Virus record (IMG/VR): IMGVR_UViG_3300013116_000108
Location: 62,001-126,000 of that record
Strand: one strand, 5' to 3'
DNA length: 64,000 bases
The notes below the pieces were generated by a model. The model worked only from the letters and a program-made list of their open reading frames with translations, was not told the DNA's origin and ran no database searches. Shown piece after piece: positions 40,708-63,975 of this stretch (the stretch's first letter is position 1; each line of letters opens with the position of its first letter). Made by a program: the position numbers and the translations under genes.

Positions 40708-41057
40708 GTGTATACACTTCCTATTATAAAGTAATCAACAACAAATGTCAACTCAGCACCTAAAAATACTGCTATCCAATAGTTGCCTATCCAATTCCAT
40801 AACTGCTTGATAACCCACCAAGCCATTAATACTCTTATTGAGTATAACACATCTGCCCATATGATGTCAAGCCATAGAAACGAATCTGCTTGAAAATAAT
40901 TGTAGAATACAAAGTTATCGTATATAAAACTTAATTGGGCCATAAAGAATACTGCCCAATAGTAAGTTAAATATTTGTTTAAAAATTTAACTAGTGGTCC
41001 TGAAACCACTAGTCGATATATGACATAGGTAAAGTTAGCGATTGCTAACTCAATCAT
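40704..41057 (-). CDS. Small integral membrane protein (3-4 TM)
   Basis: Hydrophobic, aromatic-rich 117-aa ORF. Confidence 0.65.
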   Translation of the reverse strand: MIELAIANFTYVIYRLVVSGPLVKFLNKYLTYYWAVFFMAQLSFIYDNFVFYNYFQADSFLWLDIIWADVLYSIRVLMAWWVIKQLWNWIGNYWIAVFLGAELTFVVDYFIIGSVYT

Positions 41058-55350: not shown

Positions 55351-58300
55351 TTACCCGGATATAGAACCTGTGTTTTGGATTCTAACAGGTATGTAAATAA
55401 ACTCTACTGATTTAACAGGTTCAACAGCAACGTCTAGATATAATTCATTTCTGTCTATTCTTGCTGATGTGTTATTAGTTTCATCACATACTACCAAGTA
55501 ATCATATAAACCTCTTTTAGAAACTAAGTCGTTCATTAGTGATTCTACAACACCTTTGATTTCGTCCCTAGTTAACTTGTCATTTGGTTCAAATACAAAT
55601 GGTTTTGTAATTTCGCCTAGTCTTTCTCTGATATATGCTACAAGTCTTGCTACGTTGATTCTATCTAACGCTGAAGCAGAACCATGTCTAGTTTTGTTAC
55701 CAAAGTTAAGTATACCAACACCTGGGAAGAATGCGATTGGATTAATCTTATTCTCATATAAAGTATCTCTTAAAGATTCTTTAATACCAACTGTTTGGAA
55801 TTCACCAGTAGCACTATCAATGTGTCCTAACGCTGTAGCATTATCTACGCCACCTCGTCTTGTGCCTGCTGGAGCAAACCATGGAAAACTAGCATCATCT
55901 GAACGTAACATTGTTCTCAATGCCATGTGTGTTGGAGGAACAACAATTCCGTTACCATCTAAGTCTGTAGTTCTACCCGATGGATAAAACACACCTAAAT
56001 ATGTATCTGCTGTTACTAGTCCATTTTCATTGTTATCAATAGCAAGTTTTGTGTTATTAGCCCAATTTTGTATATCAGTACTATTTGGTGCTAGTCTCAT
56101 TGGAGCATCTCCAAGAACAAAGCCTGTATTTCGTCTTTCATTATTAAGTGCTACTAAGTTAGCCATTAGTTCTGGATATCCAGGAGCAACTAATAAGTTA
56201 AAGTTACGTTGTTCTTCACGTATCTCATCTGATGAAGTTACCGCTGACTTCATTGCGGAAACAATAGTATTACGCTGAGCATGTCTACCTACAAACGGAG
56301 CACCGTCATTTTGTATTCCTGATACAGTTACCCAAGCATTTGTTTCTGTTGGTAAAGTTTTACCTGGGAAGTCAGTAGCATTAAAGTACGCTTTCTTGTA
56401 TTCTTTAACGTTATTTGAGCTACGTCTTAAGTTAAATGCTAACATACCTCTTGGATACAATGCGGCACTTGGAGCATCAATATCTGTGTAGTCACTTGTT
56501 AACAATGTTTTAATTGGTGTCATAGTTGATGTTGTTACATCATCTGTAGCACTATCATGGAACCTAAAGTCAGCAAATAAAATACCATCTTCTGACGTTT
56601 GGTCTGTAGTATCAATTGCTACCCATTTATCTTCTGAAGCAACTGATTCCCATCTACTAATTTTAAAAGTATCTGGGTCAGAGGTGTCAATCCAAAGGTC
56701 GCCATATACAAGTGCTGTATTATCAGACTGTACTAGTGGCTCTGTTGCTGACACAATTGGTCCATCTGGTGAAGTGTTAGATAAGTTAAATCCTCTAGCA
56801 TCTGTAGTAACACCTTGGTATCCTTTCCAAGTAACACCATCATGTATCATAATATCCGCATCACTAACTGCGGCGTTAAACCATTTAGTTCCGTCTGCCG
56901 GATCTGCTGTTGGTTGTGTAGTACTTGCTGAGTAAGTGTAAGTTTGCCAATTAGATACAATTATATCTGAATTGTTGCCTGCTCTTGCTGTAGTTAAAGA
57001 AGCAGTAATACCAGCATCAACAACTGGAGTTCCAGTAGCATCTTTAAGAACAATAACACCACCTAAGTCGTGTGTTAATGTAATAGCATTTGTTGTAGTA
57101 TCTCTCGAAACTGACAAGTTAGCAATATTTGCCGCTGTTACACCACTTACAAAATCTTCGGCAGTTTTTGCTCCAGATCCTGGTATAGTAACTGTTACCG
57201 CTGATGTTAATGTTGCCGTTTTGTCTGACATTTGAATAGTAAATGTTTCACCGCCTGTAAATGCCGGACTTGCTGTACCTGTTACACTAGTAACACCTTT
57301 AGCAATTCTCTTGAAGAATTTATAACTTCCTCTACCATTATCTTCAGCGTCTTGCTTAACGTATATTGTATCAGCCGCTACATTAATTCCGCCACCTGCT
57401 TTATCTAAACCATAGTTTGCTGACTCGTCGTTAGCATATATTGGAGCCGCATTTGCTTCAAATAGTTTAGTATTAGCGTTATAAGTTTTTAGACTAAAGT
57501 CAGCACCTTTATTAGGTGTTGTTGTTTTAATCCAAACAGACCCTGTTGGTCTTGTATAAGTGTCTGCTGTTTTCCATTCCGGAATTGATGTGTGTTCTGC
57601 AAAATCAAATTTTGGAGACCAATATCTTCCAGCAGTTAATCCACAAACTGTGAGGATAGTTCCTGTACCATTTGCTATTAATACTGATCCAGTGTTGCCA
57701 CCGCCTCCGCCATCAGCAGTGGCATTAGCATAAATTTCTAATTTGTTATTAACAACTGCCGCTGAAACGCCTGCTTCGCCGGCACCTGAAATATCAGCCG
57801 CTAGTGATGTTGCTGAAGTACCTGAGGCTGTAACTGTAGTTCCGTTAATAACAATAGTGTGTCCAGCAACAATAGTTGGTGAACTTTCTGTTCCTGTTAC
57901 AGTTGGGTGTGATGTTTGCCAAGCAGGTGAACCTACGTGTACCCAAATATTTCCGCTGTTTTTGTAAAACAATGGATTTTTAGTGTTTGTAGCATCAATG
58001 GCATATTCGCCAATTGAACCATAAGAACTCTTAGGAACTGATGCTGAAATATCATTTGAGTCAGTAATTATTTTTGGTACTACGTTAGCAAACTTTTGTG
58101 TGGACTCGTTCCAAACATGAACTCCAAATAAAGTCTTGCTAATATCAAACCATGCCGTTCCTGCCGCAGGTGCCCCAGAAGGTCTACCTGAAGAAGTAGA
58201 TAGTTGACCTAAATCAACATCTGCCCTTGTTACATACGCTCTATTACTGACACCTAGTACGCTGTAGGCCGCCATAAGTCCGTATTCGTTAACTTCACTA

Positions 58301-58557
58301 CCGTGTAGTGCTGTTCCACTTGTATTTTTATGGAAAGTAGGCTCTCCATAAGTTGTTACTAATTCTCTTTGCGAACCTATTAAATAAGTCTTTCCCGCAT
58401 TTGCTTTTGTAGTACCTGCCGCTGTTCCTGTGCTAGTACCACTTGTTTTGTCTTGGGCTGTTGCGATAACAATTAGAGGAATCGTTCCAACTGCCGTTGG
58501 AGCGTATTGCGATTCGTCTGTAATTGTAACGTCAATACCTGGTGATATAAGTGCCAT
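55351..58557 (-). CDS. gp18: Contractile tail sheath protein (gp18-like)
   Basis: MALISPGIDV, PWFAPAGTRRG, INPI, DRINVARL, FVFEPND, AVEPVKSVEFIYIP. Confidence 0.95.
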   Translation of the reverse strand: MALISPGIDVTITDESQYAPTAVGTIPLIVIATAQDKTSGTSTGTAAGTTKANAGKTYLIGSQRELVTTYGEPTFHKNTSGTALHGSEVNEYGLMAAYSVLGVSNRAYVTRADVDLGQLSTSSGRPSGAPAAGTAWFDISKTLFGVHVWNESTQKFANVVPKIITDSNDISASVPKSSYGSIGEYAIDATNTKNPLFYKNSGNIWVHVGSPAWQTSHPTVTGTESSPTIVAGHTIVINGTTVTASGTSATSLAADISGAGEAGVSAAVVNNKLEIYANATADGGGGGNTGSVLIANGTGTILTVCGLTAGRYWSPKFDFAEHTSIPEWKTADTYTRPTGSVWIKTTTPNKGADFSLKTYNANTKLFEANAAPIYANDESANYGLDKAGGGINVAADTIYVKQDAEDNGRGSYKFFKRIAKGVTSVTGTASPAFTGGETFTIQMSDKTATLTSAVTVTIPGSGAKTAEDFVSGVTAANIANLSVSRDTTTNAITLTHDLGGVIVLKDATGTPVVDAGITASLTTARAGNNSDIIVSNWQTYTYSASTTQPTADPADGTKWFNAAVSDADIMIHDGVTWKGYQGVTTDARGFNLSNTSPDGPIVSATEPLVQSDNTALVYGDLWIDTSDPDTFKISRWESVASEDKWVAIDTTDQTSEDGILFADFRFHDSATDDVTTSTMTPIKTLLTSDYTDIDAPSAALYPRGMLAFNLRRSSNNVKEYKKAYFNATDFPGKTLPTETNAWVTVSGIQNDGAPFVGRHAQRNTIVSAMKSAVTSSDEIREEQRNFNLLVAPGYPELMANLVALNNERRNTGFVLGDAPMRLAPNSTDIQNWANNTKLAIDNNENGLVTADTYLGVFYPSGRTTDLDGNGIVVPPTHMALRTMLRSDDASFPWFAPAGTRRGGVDNATALGHIDSATGEFQTVGIKESLRDTLYENKINPIAFFPGVGILNFGNKTRHGSASALDRINVARLVAYIRERLGEITKPFVFEPNDKLTRDEIKGVVESLMNDLVSKRGLYDYLVVCDETNNTSARIDRNELYLDVAVEPVKSVEFIYIPVRIQNTGSISG

Positions 58558-58607: not shown

Positions 58608-58674
58608 GCGATTAATGGTAAAAAACGTCAAAATAGATGCCCTTTATAAAGGGCACCAGCGTATAAATACTCGT

Positions 58675-59007
58675 ATGGGCAGGCCTATATGTATCACTTG
58701 TAACGCTCCAGCGGCGGTTAATTATAAAAGAAAAGATAAAACTTATTATCGTAGGTTTTGTGATAGTTGTATACGAGAGCAAAAAAAGCCTAATAGATTT
58801 AAATTACATGGTTATCAAAAACAAAGCACATGTGACCATTGCGGATATCACAGCAAATTTCCTGAAGTTTTTTTAATATGGTATTTAGATGGGAATAAAA
58901 GTAATACTAGAATAGCCAACCTTAAAACAGTATGTAAAAACTGCGAAGTTACTCTAGCGAGGCTTGGATGGTCAAAGATTGCTGGCGATCTAACACCTGA
59001 TCAATAG
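58675..59007 (+). CDS. Zn-finger/HNH-like protein (leaderless; HNH His apparently replaced)
   Basis: CITC...CDSC...CDHC...WYLDGNKSN...NLKTVCKNC; TATAAATA (58662-58669), 5 nt, ATG. Confidence 0.65.
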   Translation: MGRPICITCNAPAAVNYKRKDKTYYRRFCDSCIREQKKPNRFKLHGYQKQSTCDHCGYHSKFPEVFLIWYLDGNKSNTRIANLKTVCKNCEVTLARLGWSKIAGDLTPDQ

Positions 59008-59611
59008 AAGTATATAATGTTTTTATTGTATCTTGATTCATAATAGTAAAGTCAAAATCCCAGCCTGCCCAACGCCATTCACTACGATGTACATCAGGAT
59101 ATGCTCTAGATATAGGATTGTCTTCTGGTGGTGGATTTTGTTCTCTATTTAATTTACCTGCTTCTTTCCAGTATTCAGGTTCTGCTTCTCGCCACACTTC
59201 CCAAGTAAAACCTTTAAGCCCTTTAACCATTTCAAGTTCATTAAAGAATCTACAGTCAGGTATTACAAAGTTTTTATTAGGATTTTCTAATATTTGTTGC
59301 TTAACCAAACTAACCCAAATACCATCAAAAAACCCACGTCTTAAACATTCAGTTCCATAAAGTTGTAATACTGTTCTAGGAGTTATTTCTTTACCTGTTT
59401 CAGCAGACCAGTACTTGTCAATTTTTTCTCTAAATTCTCTAGACTCAACTGTGTCGCCTTCAAGCAATGCTCTATCCCAACCAAAAAGAGTTGATACGCC
59501 ATCTTTTAATCGGTCAGCGAAACTTAGTTTTGTAAAATTGTGTTGTTCTACTAGATAGTCAGCAACTGTACCTTTACCGTTACCTATTAACCCACATATA
59601 CCTATAATCAT
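58949..59611 (-). CDS. Deoxynucleoside monophosphate kinase (T4 gp1-like)
   Basis: IIGICGLIGNGKGT, SFADRLK, PRTVLQLYGTE, VIPDCRF.NE. Confidence 0.9.
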   Translation of the reverse strand: MIIGICGLIGNGKGTVADYLVEQHNFTKLSFADRLKDGVSTLFGWDRALLEGDTVESREFREKIDKYWSAETGKEITPRTVLQLYGTECLRRGFFDGIWVSLVKQQILENPNKNFVIPDCRFFNELEMVKGLKGFTWEVWREAEPEYWKEAGKLNREQNPPPEDNPISRAYPDVHRSEWRWAGWDFDFTIMNQDTIKTLYTSIDQVLDRQQSLTIQASLE

Positions 59612-59617
59612 ACTTGT

Positions 59618-59647
59618 ATTATACTACAAAGTCTTAGGCATTGTCAA
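59618..59647 (-). promoter_or_regulatory. sigma70 promoter; leaderless
   Basis: TTGACA, 18 nt, TATAAT, acaagt, ATG (59611). Confidence 0.8.
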
Positions 59648-60106
59648 CCTTTTTGAGGCAAGAGAATGTATTATCCAAAATACGCCTGTGTAAAACAATG
59701 TGCCTAATAACGTATTACCAAAGAAAGGTATAGCCATAACATAACAAGTCCAAAGCCCTGCTAGTGTTAAACCATAATAACCACTTAACCACACACTAAA
59801 GTTTGTAATTAAAAAGAATATTATACTTGCCAATAAGGCATTGCCAAACACATTTCTAAACTGTAATTGTGTTGCTAACAATACAGCACCGTATGTCCAG
59901 AACATATAACTATGAAATCCCCAATACAAATCGCCTATTAACATAGCACCTAATGTTACAGGAATTGCTAGTAAATTGTTCTTCATAATAAAAGGAACAA
60001 ATACCGCTACTGCTAGTATTGGTGTAAAGTTAGGAGGATGTGGGATAATTCTACTTAATCCAAGTAAACATGTGAAAAATAAAACCCAAAGTATTTTTTC
60101 TACCAT
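59624..60106 (-). CDS. DUF6580-like membrane protein (putative ECF S-component / cobalamin transport)
   Basis: RIIPHPPNFTP signature, ITNFSVW, CYVMAIPFF; about 5 TM. Confidence 0.7.
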   Translation of the reverse strand: MVEKILWVLFFTCLLGLSRIIPHPPNFTPILAVAVFVPFIMKNNLLAIPVTLGAMLIGDLYWGFHSYMFWTYGAVLLATQLQFRNVFGNALLASIIFFLITNFSVWLSGYYGLTLAGLWTCYVMAIPFFGNTLLGTLFYTGVFWIIHSLASKRLTMPKTL

Positions 60107-61866
60107 AATGTAACTTTTACTCCTGCTTGAACATTAATACCCATTTGATTATATCCATCTGGTTGTTCGTATTGTTCGTCTGTAATATTATACACACCTA
60201 AATAAAATAACTTATTCTCAACTGACTTATTAAGTACAAAATCAAATGTTGTTATAGCATCTTTATCTATTCTGCTATATGTAGAACTGTCAATGTCTTT
60301 GTGTTTTCCGTAATAGTTCATTGTAACTGTATAACTTAAATCATCTATAATTTTAGATATACTAGAATTATTAGTCCATGTAGGTCGACGTAATTTCTCA
60401 GCACCAGTATTTAACTTTGCTTCAGTGTAAGTTGTATTAGAATTAAACATATAACCATTATATACTTTATTTAACCCTACTTCTATACCCTTACTAGTTC
60501 CGCCTTCTGCTACATTACTATATGTTGAATTACCATAAGTTATACTATCTTTTTCTGTAATATAGAATAATGCTGTATCTAACCAATCATTATTATATCC
60601 TATTTCATACGAATCAAGTGTTTCTGGAGTCAAGTTAGGATTACCTGTATAACCATAACTATCAATTCCATACATTTCGTAAAGTGTTGGCAGTCTATAT
60701 CCTTGAGAGTAACTTGCTCTATAATTATTATATGCCCAACCTATCCTAGAACTTTGTTTTGTATCAAAATCGCTTATATTATCAACCCTAGTACTAAAAC
60801 TTAAAATATTATTATTATACACTTTATCTAATTCAAAAAATAACCCTGTTACATATCTATTTTCATTTACAGAACTATTGTAACTATTAATATTAGTTTG
60901 AAAATTAGCATTTGCTTCGTTGTATTCTAAACCTAATGTGTAGTCGTAACTTTCTTTATTAAAAGTATGCTGTGATAAAAACGTATCATTTGTGCTTTCA
61001 TAAGAATCAACTACACCTGATTTATTATAAGACCTATCATGTGTACTGTTATTCAATACTACTTTAGACCCGTTAAATGTTTGTAACTCTAATTGATTAT
61101 TATTCCATTCCCAGTCACTAGTATAGTTTAATACGTCTGCTGATCCACTATCTAAATTACTATTGTTTATATCTTTTATTTTATTAAATTTTAAAATATA
61201 CCCGCTACCTATGTAATCATAGTTTATATTAAACGTGTTTGTTTCTAAAGGGTCTTTTTCTGTTCCTTCAGGGTAAACACTTATACCGTCAGTAGATGTT
61301 TGATTTGCTACAATTTTAAAATTATGATTATCGGTAACATCTTTATCTGTTATACTAATTTCTTTACTAATATAATTGTTTGATCCTATAGATACATCAA
61401 TATAAGAATCACCATATGTGTTAGTATTCATATCAATAACACCTGCCGCGGCATTAGGGCCAAATGTATTGCCCATTGGACCTTTTATAACTGTTACATG
61501 ATTTATTCCAACCATATTATGTTGACTTAAATCATCTGCTCCGCTTGGAGTACTATTGTCTTTTATAGATATACCGTTTAATGTAATTAAACTATGGTCA
61601 CTTTCTGTTCCCCTAATAAACAAACTACTAGATTGGCCTGGTGGACCATTTTGTATTATGTTTACGCCTTCAACTTGCTGTACACTATTACTGTCAATTA
61701 TATCATACGAATATGTTGATGTTGCTAAGTCACTTGCTGTACGAGGAATAATTATTGTTATTTCAAGATGTTTGATTTCTTTATCTAATGTTTCCAGCAC
61801 TAAATCCTCCGCTTTTACTATATTCGCGAAAAGCAGAGTAAAAACGAATAGTATCATTTTTATCAT
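60100..61866 (-). CDS. btuB: TonB-dependent outer-membrane receptor, BtuB-like
   Basis: Signal peptide; plug motifs GPPGQSSSLFIRGTE and VIKGP...FGPNAAAGVI; YSQGYRLPTLYEMYG; NPNLTPE; aromatic C-terminal W. Confidence 0.75.
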   Translation of the reverse strand: MIKMILFVFTLLFANIVKAEDLVLETLDKEIKHLEITIIIPRTASDLATSTYSYDIIDSNSVQQVEGVNIIQNGPPGQSSSLFIRGTESDHSLITLNGISIKDNSTPSGADDLSQHNMVGINHVTVIKGPMGNTFGPNAAAGVIDMNTNTYGDSYIDVSIGSNNYISKEISITDKDVTDNHNFKIVANQTSTDGISVYPEGTEKDPLETNTFNINYDYIGSGYILKFNKIKDINNSNLDSGSADVLNYTSDWEWNNNQLELQTFNGSKVVLNNSTHDRSYNKSGVVDSYESTNDTFLSQHTFNKESYDYTLGLEYNEANANFQTNINSYNSSVNENRYVTGLFFELDKVYNNNILSFSTRVDNISDFDTKQSSRIGWAYNNYRASYSQGYRLPTLYEMYGIDSYGYTGNPNLTPETLDSYEIGYNNDWLDTALFYITEKDSITYGNSTYSNVAEGGTSKGIEVGLNKVYNGYMFNSNTTYTEAKLNTGAEKLRRPTWTNNSSISKIIDDLSYTVTMNYYGKHKDIDSSTYSRIDKDAITTFDFVLNKSVENKLFYLGVYNITDEQYEQPDGYNQMGINVQAGVKVTLW

Positions 61867-61871
61867 TCTGT

Positions 61872-61900
61872 ATTATAGTGGAAAAACTTAACAGAGTCAA
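61872..61900 (-). promoter_or_regulatory. sigma70 promoter; leaderless btuB
   Basis: TTGACT, 17 nt, TATAAT, acaga, ATG (61866). Confidence 0.8.
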
Positions 61901-61917
61901 GTTTTTTTTTGGATGTT

Positions 61918-62679
61918 TTATCCTATAACAAAACTTAGCGGTAAACTACCTTCAACGTAATTTAATAAATCTTGTTCTAGTTTTTCAAGTTCGGCCATTG
62001 CTTCTTGTTTTAATTGATCACCGTTCATTGTAGTTCCGCCTTGTGGACCAGCAATAGTGGCAAATTTACTTCTTGCTTCTCCTAGCATATACTTACATTG
62101 TGCTTTTGTGTAATCGTATATCCAAGGTTTAGTTCTGTGATCTTTTAAAAGTGTTACATCTGGCTTATGGTTGTATAACCAAAGAAGTACACTTTCGCCT
62201 GTAGAATTTACTTTTCTAACTATTGTTAGTTTTTTACTTACAGGGTTAAATGTAAAATTAATATGTCCACCAAACATTCTAGCAGTTAATTCTTGATATT
62301 GAGTAAACAATTCGTATGTTGCTAGGCCGCCTACTCGTCCTGCCTGCATTAAGTAAACATTAACATAGCCTGCTTCGAATGGCTCAAAACTATTAGCACC
62401 ATCTCCGTCGCTAGATCCTATTGTTCTACGAAATACTTGTCTTACTTCTGTAACTTGGCTAGGTAACGTGTACTCTTGTGTATCTGCTACTAGTTCTAAA
62501 AAGCCGTAACTTTCTTCAACGCTATTCGAACTACGTTGTCTGTATACATCTGCCGCCTTGTTAAAAGCAATATCATAATGTTGTGGATCTAACTCCACAT
62601 CTACCATGCCATCACCTAAACTATATCGCACATAATCAAAGCATTTTTGCTTTTCAGTTTGGAGTTCTGTGTTTGCCAT
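61918..62679 (-). CDS. gp13: Neck protein (T4 gp13-like)
   Basis: LGDGMVDVELDPQHY, WIYDYTKAQCKYMLGEARSKF...PQGGTTMNG; TAAATA at 62704-62709. Confidence 0.85.
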   Translation of the reverse strand: MANTELQTEKQKCFDYVRYSLGDGMVDVELDPQHYDIAFNKAADVYRQRSSNSVEESYGFLELVADTQEYTLPSQVTEVRQVFRRTIGSSDGDGANSFEPFEAGYVNVYLMQAGRVGGLATYELFTQYQELTARMFGGHINFTFNPVSKKLTIVRKVNSTGESVLLWLYNHKPDVTLLKDHRTKPWIYDYTKAQCKYMLGEARSKFATIAGPQGGTTMNGDQLKQEAMAELEKLEQDLLNYVEGSLPLSFVIG

Positions 62680-62706
62680 TTTTTGTTCCTACTTTAATAG
62701 TAGTAT

Positions 62707-63975
62707 TTAGCTCGTTAGCAATAGTATTGTTTCGGGATTTAAACGGCCGTTAAGTTTAGTTTCTGTTACTTTGAGGTTTTCGAAGAACTTTTTACGTTGT
62801 ATTTTACCACAATTATTAAACTCTTTAAGTTGTTCTTCTGGTTTTCTTAGTGTTTTACACACACTTTGCTTTTCGTCATACCTAATTAGTGTAGTACCTT
62901 TAACTTCTAATCCTGTGCCGTCACGTTTTTGTTTAAGCGGATCTATTGAAGAAGTGATGTAATACCCTAACTTTCTAGTTTTTGTGTTATATACCCAAAG
63001 CTCGTTAGCCTTAATAATGTCTACAGGGTTAATACTTACAAGTGCTAGTTTCTCATCAGACTTCTTATATTTTACTCTTGTTACTAGTTTTTCAGCACTT
63101 TTAGGTTTAACTTTACGAGGTTTACGAGTAAGTTTTGCTTCTGACATTAGCATATCACAAGCGTCGCAAATCAATTTATATGCTTGGTACCTACTTTTTA
63201 TTTCTTCATCAGTAAAAACAGCAAAACCTTCCTCAAGTTGACTACGCCAATCTAATTCTTGTTCTGTCATTTTTGCTTTTTGTTTTGCTGTAGGTGGGTT
63301 TAGTAACTCATGTAACTCATTATACCCTGGTTCATAAAAAGTTTTAATAATTTTAGCATGATTACCTTTACATTGATGTACTCTTAACCATTTTAGAGGA
63401 GTAAAAGTTTTTAAATCTATAAGTTCTACTCCAGATTCCATAACGTCATCAATTTCAACTGTCATTCTAATAGCCGCGGCATATAGGCGTTGTTGAATTG
63501 TAGGTTGATATACTTGGACTTTTTCTGCTTCTTCTTTTGCTTTTTCTTCTACAAGAGTTTTACCTTTCTCAATAGCACCTGCTATCTGAACTTTAATCCA
63601 ATCTTTTGTTGGCTTAATAACACCCATTGTACCTGGCAATGATTGCCAGTGTTCATCTTCTTTTTTATTATAATCTGGCATTCCACGTAACAGCATACGG
63701 CAATTTATAGATGTTGTTGTACCTATAACGTAACTAGGAACAGCCTTAGCACACTTAATATCGTCTTTGCTATAGCCATTTTGGTTCATCCATTCGTATG
63801 TATGCTTAACTAATTCATCTGGTTTAAACGTATGGTAATACCAAGAACTAGTTCCTTGCTTAAAACGGTGGTATTGAGCTCCGTCCCATTCTTCCCAACC
63901 ATCCCACTTGGGTTCTAGCAACTTATCAGCCGCTGTTATTCTAGTTGATTTTCGTAGTTGTTTACGTTTTGCCAA
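62707..63975 (-). CDS. Hypothetical protein of the type seen in marine T4-like phages
   Basis: TTG start with AGGAG; C-terminal KPRK...LWVYNTKTRKLG...VKGTT...KTLRKPEEQL. Confidence 0.6.
   Translation of the reverse strand: MAKRKQLRKSTRITAADKLLEPKWDGWEEWDGAQYHRFKQGTSSWYYHTFKPDELVKHTYEWMNQNGYSKDDIKCAKAVPSYVIGTTTSINCRMLLRGMPDYNKKEDEHWQSLPGTMGVIKPTKDWIKVQIAGAIEKGKTLVEEKAKEEAEKVQVYQPTIQQRLYAAAIRMTVEIDDVMESGVELIDLKTFTPLKWLRVHQCKGNHAKIIKTFYEPGYNELHELLNPPTAKQKAKMTEQELDWRSQLEEGFAVFTDEEIKSRYQAYKLICDACDMLMSEAKLTRKPRKVKPKSAEKLVTRVKYKKSDEKLALVSINPVDIIKANELWVYNTKTRKLGYYITSSIDPLKQKRDGTGLEVKGTTLIRYDEKQSVCKTLRKPEEQLKEFNNCGKIQRKKFFENLKVTETKLNGRLNPETILLLTS

Follow-up and report, generated by a model that had tools for sequence, protein, structure and literature searches.

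What would a large uncultured marine phage gain from carrying a TonB-dependent outer-membrane receptor gene that overlaps a gene for a small membrane protein of unknown function, DUF6580? We addressed this question in a 64,000-nt stretch (hereafter the window; positions 62,001 to 126,000) of the IMG/VR virus record IMGVR_UViG_3300013116_000108, a 204-kb record that is about 56% complete. An earlier note, made from the sequence alone, had described an apparently intact BtuB-like receptor overlapping a DUF6580 gene, behind a strong early promoter, without a riboswitch and between neck and dNMP kinase genes. It proposed a two-membrane vitamin B12 uptake module that escapes B12 feedback and boosts dNTP or SAM supply or, alternatively, remodels the cell surface against competing phages. 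What the note saw in the sequence is confirmed by our analysis. Its interpretation is only partly supported: import of vitamin B12 is the best-supported reading, but the proposed benefit through a class II ribonucleotide reductase is not.

Coordinates of the gene pair and its surroundings (positions in the window)
Feature	Position	Strand	Size	Assignment
Promoter-like site of the receptor gene	61872..61900	-		Sigma-70 type, TTGACT-17-TATAAT, 11 of 12 consensus positions
TonB-dependent receptor gene	60100..61866	-	588 aa	BtuB-like; Pfam Plug 7e-14 (52.7 bits), TonB_dep_Rec_b-barrel 5e-23 (83 bits)
DUF6580 gene	59624..60106	-	160 aa	PF20221, 9e-38 (130.5 bits against a cut-off of 27; residues 4-154)
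Upstream flank	61918..62679	-	253 aa	gp13-like neck / head-tail adaptor; phrog_211, 6.8e-34; PF26809 (Phage_T4_gp13) in syntenic relatives
Downstream flank	58949..59611	-		dNMP kinase; phrog_139, 1.8e-40
Promoter of the dNMP kinase gene	59647..59618			Sigma-70 type, 12 of 12 consensus positions; inside the 3' end of the DUF6580 gene
Tail sheath gene	55351..58557

Both open reading frames are intact, and they overlap by 7 nt, with the ATG of DUF6580 lying inside ...TTATGGTAG at the stop codon of the receptor gene, which suggests translational coupling. The -10 box of the promoter-like site ends 5 nt before the receptor ATG, within an upstream gap of only 51 nt, so that the transcript would be leaderless or nearly so. 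The full promoter pattern occurs six times in the window against 0.3 expected by chance, always on the coding strand, and five of the six sites lie no more than 50 nt upstream of a start codon. That it is an early promoter is an inference by analogy with T4. We found no riboswitch at Rfam gathering score anywhere in the window, and none at E<=1 in positions 59400-62900. The same arrangement recurs in independent IMG/VR contigs at 100, 98 and 94% identity, and is therefore not an assembly artefact. Both genes are under purifying selection, with dN/dS of 0.09-0.18 for the receptor and 0.08-0.34 for DUF6580, where values are 0.08-0.18 between the closest phage copies and reach 0.34 for more distant DUF6580 pairs.

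The receptor has a signal peptide (residues 1-19, MIKMILFVFTLLFANIVKA), a TonB-box-like segment LEITIIIPR (residues ~33-41), a plug domain, a predicted 22-strand barrel and a C-terminal aromatic residue. Both Pfam domains score above their cut-offs, which places it in the TonB-dependent receptor superfamily. Among all NCBIfam TonB-receptor models, only the two BtuB models (TIGR01779 and PRK10641) are significant (5.6e-44 and 2.7e-31), the next model being at E 6e-4. However, their scores (150.7 and 108.8 bits) fall far below the equivalog cut-offs (599.7 and 836), and we therefore call the protein BtuB-like rather than BtuB. The only PDB sequence hits are BtuB. An AF2 model (pLDDT 87.6) gave E. 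coli BtuB as its top 11 Foldseek hits (E 1e-35, TM 0.82-0.84 over about 580 columns), ahead of siderophore receptors at E 4e-28. The plug motifs are conserved, and the TonB-box-like segment aligns with DTLVVTANR of BtuB and is conserved in the phage homologues, although this is evidence at the sequence level only.

In phylogenetic analysis, the phage receptors form a clade with Pelagibacteraceae receptors (SH-aLRT 100), and three of these four cellular receptors (loci L033, L047 and L059 of our set of cellular DUF6580 loci) sit behind AdoCbl-II riboswitches. In contrast, no riboswitch was found at E<=1 before the closest clearly cellular receptor (locus L094). E. coli BtuB lies in a different clade, and the backbone of the tree is unresolved. 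Grouping with siderophore or heme receptors, which had been set beforehand as the outcome that would count against a B12 function, was not observed in the profile searches, the structural comparison or the tree.

DUF6580 carries the invariant PHPPNFTP, TNF..W and CY..A.PF motifs of its family, and its AF2 model (pLDDT 88) has six/seven helices and an ECF S-component-like fold. A Foldseek search of the model against the PDB gave only weak E-values. However, an exhaustive structural search (VIA) ranked BtuM, a solitary B12 transporter, first (8ovv_A, Z 13.4, rmsd 2.7 over 147 residues), followed by 14 further S-components at Z 9.7-12.7. Since the Z-scores of BtuM and the other S-components are within about 1 of each other, the fold alone does not name the substrate. 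Neither the single sequence nor a profile of DUF6580 gave any PDB sequence hit at E<=10, and there is no detectable sequence similarity to BtuM. No EcfT (CbiQ) was found in the phage record or in five DUF6580-bearing genomes, which include a complete SAR86 genome but are mostly incomplete.

In cells, DUF6580 is strongly linked to cobalamin riboswitches and B12 genes. In 15 of 28 cellular loci scanned, DUF6580 lies within 6 kb of a cobalamin riboswitch, including six of 12 loci chosen because they showed no tblastn match to the phage receptor. About half of the cellular loci show no riboswitch (for example SAR86 and Leptospira). Neighbours include BtuB-like receptors, PduO adenosyltransferase, MetH and DUF4430 proteins, in operons of the types riboswitch>TBDR>DUF6580, riboswitch>DUF4430 proteins>DUF6580>PduO adenosyltransferase, and riboswitch>TBDR>DUF6580>MetH. 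The Rfam scans of the DUF6580 loci found no other riboswitch class at gathering score, apart from a glutamine riboswitch in one phage locus (L002).

Which enzyme might use the imported vitamin? The ribonucleotide reductase of the phage is class Ia NrdA/NrdB, above the equivalog cut-offs, and needs no B12, and no nrdJ was found in the 204-kb record. Moreover, tblastn searches of the phage genome gave no hits for MetH, PduO adenosyltransferase or DUF4430 proteins, and we did not find CobS_N, MotA/ExbB or TonB_C in this incomplete record. A likelier consumer lies outside the window and could not have been seen from it: a B12-binding radical SAM methyltransferase with a CxxxCxxC motif that matches the KedN5 family at 270 bits. 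It is part of a cassette with an adenylating (AMP-binding) enzyme and a SAM methyltransferase, at positions 155,847-159,726 of the record, about 34 kb from the gene pair.

We found the receptor on nine IMG/VR contigs and DUF6580 on at least 92; of the 80 examined, 37 have an adjacent TBDR. Receptor-DUF6580 pairs occur in several phage lineages, in different positions and in both gene orders. B12-binding proteins occur in seven of 20 other DUF6580-bearing viral records. The four whose ORFs we checked all combine B12-binding and Radical_SAM domains, and tblastn places those of five of the 20 records, plus those of the relative G001, in the same family as the phage's own enzyme. In two records the radical SAM gene lies 1.5-2.3 kb from DUF6580. 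By contrast, in 50,697 GenBank phage records DUF6580 has no hit and this radical SAM enzyme a single weak one. Megablast of the region against GenBank phages gave no match, and a protein search with the receptor hit only bacterial BtuB in mislabelled records. In the literature searched, no paper mentions DUF6580 and none combines phage, TonB-dependent receptor, auxiliary metabolic gene and vitamin B12.

Taken together, we consider that the two genes most likely form a phage-carried, riboswitch-free module for the import of vitamin B12 (corrinoid), with a probability of about 0.68. In this view, the module would be transcribed by host RNA polymerase from its sigma-70-type promoter; the receptor would be exported through its signal peptide, inserted in the host outer membrane and energised through its TonB box by the host TonB-ExbBD system; and the translationally coupled DUF6580 protein would work like BtuM, moving the corrinoid across the inner membrane without an ECF module. 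As the cobalamin riboswitch that gates many cellular versions is missing, uptake would continue whatever the B12 status of the cell. The most likely beneficiary would be the radical SAM methyltransferase cassette, and host B12 enzymes such as MetH may also benefit. Our data establish the integrity of the genes, their families, folds (from AF2 models) and genomic context, their purifying selection and their co-occurrence, whereas cobalamin binding, the substrate, transport itself, expression and its timing, the dependence on host TonB and the link to the radical SAM enzyme are inferred. An alphaproteobacterial-type tmRNA hints at an alphaproteobacterial host, although this remains unproven; TonB_C was not detected in five DUF6580-bearing cellular genomes.

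Other readings appear less likely. The receptor might remodel the surface of the infected cell by crowding, masking or replacing host receptors, so that competing phages adsorb less and transport would be incidental. Indeed, large-genome phages encode many beta-barrel outer-membrane proteins, including a 22-strand TonB-dependent receptor in Lak phages, and receptor interference has been proposed for them by analogy with lambda Lom (bioRxiv 10.64898/2026.10.24.761521). Moreover, close relatives carry a small OMP-like gene in place of the receptor, which is therefore dispensable within the lineage. This 115-aa ORF is not supported as a deleted remnant of the receptor, as only the signal peptides are alike, and we treat it as a different protein, for which an ESM-Atlas search gave Phage_OMP as a lead. 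Surface remodelling is not excluded, but nothing specific favours it, and we regard it as unlikely: it does not explain the conserved inner-membrane partner, the conserved TonB box and plug, the B12-specific cellular context of both genes or the co-occurrence with B12-radical SAM enzymes.

It is similarly unlikely, though possible, that the same architecture imports another compound, such as a corrin precursor or analogue (cobinamide, pseudocobalamin), cobalt, or an unrelated vitamin. The low equivalog scores, the separate clade and the loci without riboswitch leave room for this, DUF6580 matches biotin, riboflavin, folate, thiamin and cobalt (CbiM, Z 9.7) S-components nearly as well as BtuM, and cobalamin riboswitches also control cobalt transporters. 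However, cobalamin was the only riboswitch class found at gathering score at the cellular loci, and the neighbouring PduO adenosyltransferase, MetH and DUF4430 proteins all act on complete corrinoids. Cobalt alone would be of no use to a phage or host that lacks the biosynthetic pathway, and corrinoid analogues would still count as B12-type uptake. Finally, GC content dips to 0.296 across the module against about 0.34 elsewhere, and the locus is variable among relatives, as might be expected of a recently captured, non-functional host fragment or of an assembly chimera. This reading is very unlikely and already largely refuted by the purifying selection, the same junctions in independent samples and the occurrence of the pair in several phage lineages; both ORFs are also intact and the module has its own consensus promoter.

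A broader hypothesis, which we hold only tentatively, is that a set of uncultured marine myophages, many of them very large, runs its own cobalamin supply. A riboswitch-free importer, made of a BtuB-like receptor or a small phage OMP plus DUF6580, would feed phage-encoded B12-dependent radical SAM methyltransferases that make a phage-specific product, for example a modified nucleotide or metabolite. DUF6580 would then represent a previously unrecognised and widespread family of solitary ECF-S-like B12 transporters, occurring in about a fifth of the sampled Pelagibacteraceae genomes and also in SAR86, SAR116, Leptospira and candidate-phyla bacteria.

Vitamin B12 is scarce in the ocean, is made by few microbes and shapes plankton communities. 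If phages install deregulated B12 importers in infected cells and carry B12-dependent enzymes themselves, viral infection becomes a sink and redistributor of B12, and vitamin piracy would join phosphate and carbon as a class of phage auxiliary function. The same evidence gives a testable function to DUF6580, which is found in many abundant marine bacteria that lack BtuCDF-type annotation, and points to B12 uptake in part of SAR11. The pairing with a conserved B12-radical SAM cassette also gives a handle on an unknown phage biochemical pathway.

How does this module compare with known systems? E. coli BtuB (PDB 1NQE/1NQH/2GSK) is similar to the phage receptor in size (614 against 588 aa), in its plug and 22-strand barrel, in the position of the TonB box and in the plug motifs, but the two are only 20-24% identical, and the phage gene has no cobalamin riboswitch leader and is coupled to DUF6580 rather than to BtuFCD. 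BtuM of Thiobacillus denitrificans, a solitary ECF S-component-like B12 transporter/decyanase (PMC6072759), is likewise a small inner-membrane protein with an S-component fold that occurs without an ECF module and is co-localised with btuB-like genes. However, the cobalt-ligating Cys80 of BtuM sits in loop 3, where DUF6580 has a near-invariant His65; PHPPNFTP lies in loop 1 and the invariant Cys121 in a later helix. DUF6580 is a different Pfam family, predicted to work like BtuM without being a member of its family.

The closest cellular counterparts are the riboswitch-controlled TBDR-DUF6580 operons of marine bacteria (Pelagibacteraceae, SAR116, SAR324 and Gammaproteobacteria; loci L033, L047, L059, L091, L073 and L024), which combine the same two families, usually in the same order, and of which L033, L047 and L059 hold receptors of the sister clade. 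These sit behind AdoCbl-II or classical cobalamin riboswitches, whereas the phage version sits behind a bare sigma-70-type promoter, and identity to the phage proteins is only about 26-30% for the receptor and 40-47% for DUF6580. That large phages carry host-type nutrient-acquisition or outer-membrane genes, presumably expressed during infection, is already known, as for cyanophage pstS and the TonB-dependent receptors of huge phages (Lak phages, and the SusC-like protein of Mar_Mega_1). The papers on phage receptors that we consulted mention neither B12 nor an inner-membrane partner, whereas the module described here is predicted to span both membranes and co-occurs with a phage enzyme predicted to need the imported cofactor.

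On the minus strand of the window, bases 62,001-126,000 of a 204,100-bp linear IMG/VR virus record which CheckV estimates to be about 56% complete, two intact ORFs overlap by 7 nt, the ATG of the downstream one lying inside ...TTATGGTAG, an arrangement that is typical of translational coupling. Pfam identifies a Plug domain (7e-14) and the TonB-dependent receptor (TBDR) barrel (5e-23) in the first ORF, and DUF6580 (9e-38, 130.5 bits) in the second. The pair is preceded by a 253-aa gp13-like neck/head-tail adaptor gene (phrog_211; PF26809 in syntenic relatives) and followed by a dNMP kinase gene (phrog_139), then by an HNH-like ORF on the other strand and a 1068-aa tail sheath gene. The HNH-like ORF, whose Pfam and PHROG matches are weak, overlaps the 3' end of the kinase gene by 59 nt and may be a homing-endonuclease-type insertion. 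The 51-nt gap before the receptor gene holds TTGACT-17-TATAAT, which matches 11 of 12 consensus positions. The full pattern TTGACW-N16-18-TATAAT occurs 6 times in the window against 0.3 expected, always on the coding strand, and five of the six copies lie no more than 50 nt upstream of a start codon. The promoter-like motif is therefore real, whereas its designation as early is an inference by analogy with T4. Its -10 box ends 5 nt before the ATG, so the mRNA would be leaderless or nearly so, and at three consensus sigma-70-type promoters of this phage, this one included, that distance is only 5-15 nt, which suggests leaderless or very short-leader transcripts. No Rfam family reaches gathering score anywhere in the window, and no riboswitch appears even at E<=1 in positions 59400-62900. 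Every part of what the earlier note had observed, namely an intact receptor overlapping a small membrane gene behind a strong promoter, between neck and dNMP kinase genes and without a riboswitch, is confirmed.

Location of the features discussed in the text (G000:C1, coordinates in the phage record; L numbers, loci of DUF6580-bearing or related contigs and genomes, or segments of the record itself; TBDR, TonB-dependent receptor)
Feature	Location	Strand	Description
BtuB-like receptor ORF	window 60100..61866	-	588 aa
DUF6580 ORF	window 59624..60106	-	160 aa
Sigma-70-type promoters with -10 box close to the start codon	window 59618-59647, 61872-61900, 40723-40751	-	61872-61900 precedes the receptor gene
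HNH-like ORF	window 58615-59007	+	130 aa, between the sheath and dNMP kinase genes
Low-GC segment	window 60001-62000		GC 0.296
tmRNA	G000:C1:54041-54378 (L128:1041-1378)	-	permuted, alphaproteobacterial type; outside the window
tRNA-Ala and tRNA-Thr	22.7-23.5 kb		carried by the phage
Three-gene cassette	G000:C1:155847-159726 (L123:7847-11726)	-	AMP-binding enzyme (470 aa), SAM methyltransferase (209 aa), B12-binding radical SAM enzyme (618 aa); outside the window
B12-binding radical SAM gene	G000:C1:155,847-157,703		618 aa, within the cassette
Small secreted OMP-like protein	L129:3663-4007, L120:1160-1507, L008:5666-6028, L011:5645-6007		114-120 aa, directly upstream of DUF6580 in sibling phages and in an unrelated phage group
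Glutamine riboswitch	L002:5442-5489		RF01739, 51.7 bits; related T4-like contig
Tetrapyrrole-pathway genes	L098:3322-4149; L012/L013:10876-11682		porphobilinogen deaminase; coproporphyrinogen oxidase
Pelagibacteraceae TBDR-DUF6580 pair	L065:4024-6432		single-cell genome, no riboswitch
Gammaproteobacterial DUF6580 operon	L024:3399-7031		AdoCbl-II riboswitch, DUF4430 proteins, DUF6580, PduO adenosyltransferase

The same receptor-DUF6580 junction is present in IMG/VR contigs from other samples at 100, 98 and 94% identity, and versions of about 70% identity sit in a different place, after gp23, in further T4-like contigs. Against these copies, dN/dS is 0.09-0.18 for the receptor and 0.08-0.34 for DUF6580, indicating a real phage gene pair rather than an artefact. 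GC falls across the module against about 0.33-0.37 in the neighbouring 2-kb windows, consistent either with a foreign origin or with membrane-protein composition. The phage has a T4-type portal, baseplate and sheath, and its sheath is closest (35-46% identity) to those of jumbo phages such as PA5oct, SCTP-2, Atu_ph07 and the Rak2-like E. coli phages.

Concerning the receptor, a search against all NCBIfam models returned only the two BtuB equivalogs as significant, TIGR01779 at 5.6e-44 (150.7 bits) and PRK10641 at 2.7e-31, the next receptor model being at 6e-4. However, both BtuB scores are far below their equivalog cut-offs, and we therefore refer to the protein as BtuB-like. The only PDB sequence hits are E. 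coli BtuB, at about 1e-19. An AF2 model (pLDDT 87.6, pTM 0.86) has E. coli BtuB as its top 11 Foldseek matches (E 1e-35 to 1e-30, TM 0.82-0.84, rmsd about 3 A), while siderophore receptors start at E 4e-28 with lower target coverage. The plug motifs and a TonB-box-like strand (LEITIIIPR, aligned with BtuB DTLVVTANR) are conserved among the phage homologues. In a maximum-likelihood tree rooted on FepA/CirA, the phage receptors form a clade (SH-aLRT 100) with four Pelagibacteraceae receptors, three of which lie directly behind AdoCbl-II riboswitches scoring 84-101 bits. E. coli BtuB, a Xanthomonadaceae BtuB and another riboswitch-controlled receptor form a second clade (SH-aLRT 97), and the backbone between the two clades is unresolved. 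Grouping with siderophore or heme receptors, which had been set beforehand as the outcome that would speak against a cobalamin receptor, did not occur.

The AF2 model of DUF6580 (pLDDT 88) has an ECF S-component fold. In an exhaustive structural search its top match is BtuM, the solitary B12 transporter of Thiobacillus (8ovv_A: Z 13.4, rmsd 2.7 A, 147 of 160 residues), followed by biotin, riboflavin, folate, thiamin, pantothenate and cobalt S-components at Z 9.7-12.7. The predicted fold is therefore clear, but alone it does not name the substrate, for which the indication comes from genomic context. Of 28 cellular DUF6580 loci scanned with Rfam, 15 have a cobalamin riboswitch within 6 kb, including 6 of 12 loci that were chosen because they showed no tblastn match to the phage receptor, and no other riboswitch class appeared at gathering score in the cellular loci. 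Several operon arrangements were seen: a riboswitch followed by a TBDR and DUF6580 (SAR116, Pelagibacteraceae, an alphaproteobacterium); a riboswitch followed directly by DUF6580 (SAR324, a Pseudomonadota MAG); a riboswitch followed by two DUF4430 proteins, the second with an alpha-alpha toroid domain, then DUF6580 and a PduO-type cobalamin adenosyltransferase (a gammaproteobacterium); a riboswitch followed by a TBDR, PduO adenosyltransferase, ROK and DUF6580; and a riboswitch followed by a TBDR (in fragments), DUF6580 and MetH (Ignavibacteriota). In the gammaproteobacterial operon, the pairing of DUF4430 and alpha-alpha toroid domains resembles transcobalamin, and it may represent a B12 capture system without a receptor. 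By contrast, in one Pelagibacteraceae single-cell genome the TBDR-DUF6580 pair lies inside a sugar-nucleotide/glycosyltransferase island and has no riboswitch, although other loci of this family have AdoCbl-II riboswitches. DUF6580 is present in 24 of 121 sampled Pelagibacteraceae genomes, which suggests B12 uptake in part of SAR11.

As reported for BtuM (PMC6072759), DUF6580 occurs where no EcfT is detectable, none being found in the phage record or in five DUF6580-bearing genomes, including a complete SAR86 genome. However, DUF6580 is not a member of the BtuM family: there is no sequence similarity, and where BtuM has its cobalt-ligating Cys, in loop 3, DUF6580 has a near-invariant His65, together with an invariant PHPPNFTP motif in loop 1 and an invariant Cys121 elsewhere. 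We infer that it works like BtuM without belonging to its family.

As for what the phage might use B12 for, the earlier note had proposed dNTP supply through a B12-dependent class II ribonucleotide reductase, but this fails for the phage's own enzymes: its reductase is class Ia, with NrdA at 1170.7 bits and NrdB at 511 bits, both above the equivalog cut-offs. No MetH, PduO or DUF4430 homologue is present in the record either. Outside the window, the phage encodes a protein with a B12-binding domain, a Radical_SAM domain and a CPYACSFC cluster motif, whose best family match is the KedN5-type methylcobalamin-dependent radical SAM C-methyltransferases (270 bits, below the subfamily cut-off). It sits in a cassette with a SAM methyltransferase and an AMP-binding enzyme, next to Rad50/Mre11-like genes.

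Relatives show the same combination: a 122-kb contig has the radical SAM enzyme at 92% identity and DUF6580 at 79%, and a 182-kb contig has the receptor (72%), DUF6580 (53%) and a 31%-identical B12-radical SAM enzyme. More broadly, at least 92 IMG/VR contigs encode DUF6580, and of the 80 examined 37 have an adjacent TBDR (in either gene order), 9 have a small secreted OMP-like ORF directly upstream, and 34 have neither. Of 20 further DUF6580-bearing viral records, 7 have a B12-binding domain protein, including 5 of the 7 records that are at least 90% complete. The four whose ORFs were checked with Pfam all combine B12-binding and Radical_SAM domains, and in two genomes the radical SAM gene lies 1.5-2.3 kb upstream of DUF6580 on the same strand. 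At the database size of the GenBank phage collection, the phage's own radical SAM enzyme detects those of five of these 20 records, plus that of the relative G001, at E<=1e-32, whereas in the 50,697 GenBank phage records it finds one weak hit and DUF6580 finds none. This is a strong, though not phylogenetically corrected, association between the predicted importer and a phage-encoded enzyme predicted to depend on B12. Tetrapyrrole-pathway genes also sit near the module in other phage contigs, with porphobilinogen deaminase next to a DUF6580-TBDR pair, and coproporphyrinogen oxidase a few kb from a lone DUF6580.

The locus itself is variable. The closest relatives by DUF6580 (79-88% identity) keep the same arrangement of neck, variable gene, DUF6580, dNMP kinase and sheath, including the 7-nt overlap, but the variable gene codes for a 114-118-aa secreted protein rather than the receptor. 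This protein is 42-43% identical to the 120-aa ORF that precedes DUF6580 in an unrelated group of marine phage contigs, and the conserved protein of both groups ends in ...TETWVGxTYxW. Its signal peptide resembles that of the receptor, and by language-model features (ESM-Atlas) it resembles the cyanophage Phage_OMP (PF24653) beta-barrel family with a score of 0.95, which we regard as a lead only. DUF6580 is therefore the constant part, and the outer-membrane partner is exchangeable. In a related T4-like contig, a glutamine riboswitch lies upstream of a 50-aa ORF that precedes the receptor-DUF6580 pair; glutamine riboswitches have been reported in Melnitz-like marine myophages (PMC9004378).

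Three observations together hint at a low-GC marine alphaproteobacterium as host: the record encodes a permuted tmRNA of alphaproteobacterial type (RF01849, 117 bits; tag ANDNVFHEDFALAA), the genome GC is about 34%, and the sister clade of the receptor is Pelagibacteraceae. TonB_C was not detected in five DUF6580-bearing cellular genomes, although this domain is short and most of those genomes are partial.

Taken together, uptake of B12 is well supported by comparative evidence and is our best explanation, with a confidence of about 0.68. The gene pair, its families and its contexts are direct observations, while the substrate, transport, expression and early timing are inferred. The interpretation of the earlier note is hence supported in part: B12 uptake stands as the favored reading, but the class II reductase rationale is not supported for the phage's own enzymes, and a phage B12-radical SAM enzyme is the better candidate consumer. 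Among the alternatives, import of a different substrate appears unlikely, as does, slightly more so, a role in surface remodelling or superinfection exclusion, whereas inert cargo or an assembly artefact is very improbable.

We found no report of a phage BtuB-like/DUF6580 module or of a function for DUF6580, a family that no paper in the library searched mentions, although this library covers only open-access papers and preprints. Phage-encoded TonB-dependent receptors have nevertheless been noted before, namely a transcribed 22-strand receptor in Lak phages, a SusC-like one in the marine megaphage Mar_Mega_1, and a gene annotated as a TonB-dependent receptor in the pelagiphage Skadi. In those papers, none of which mentions B12 or an inner-membrane partner, they are read as envelope remodelling, carbohydrate uptake or an adsorption clue. 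Auxiliary uptake genes of phages are already known, and what the present pair adds is a BtuB-like receptor coupled to a predicted inner-membrane partner, together with a functional prediction for a DUF family.
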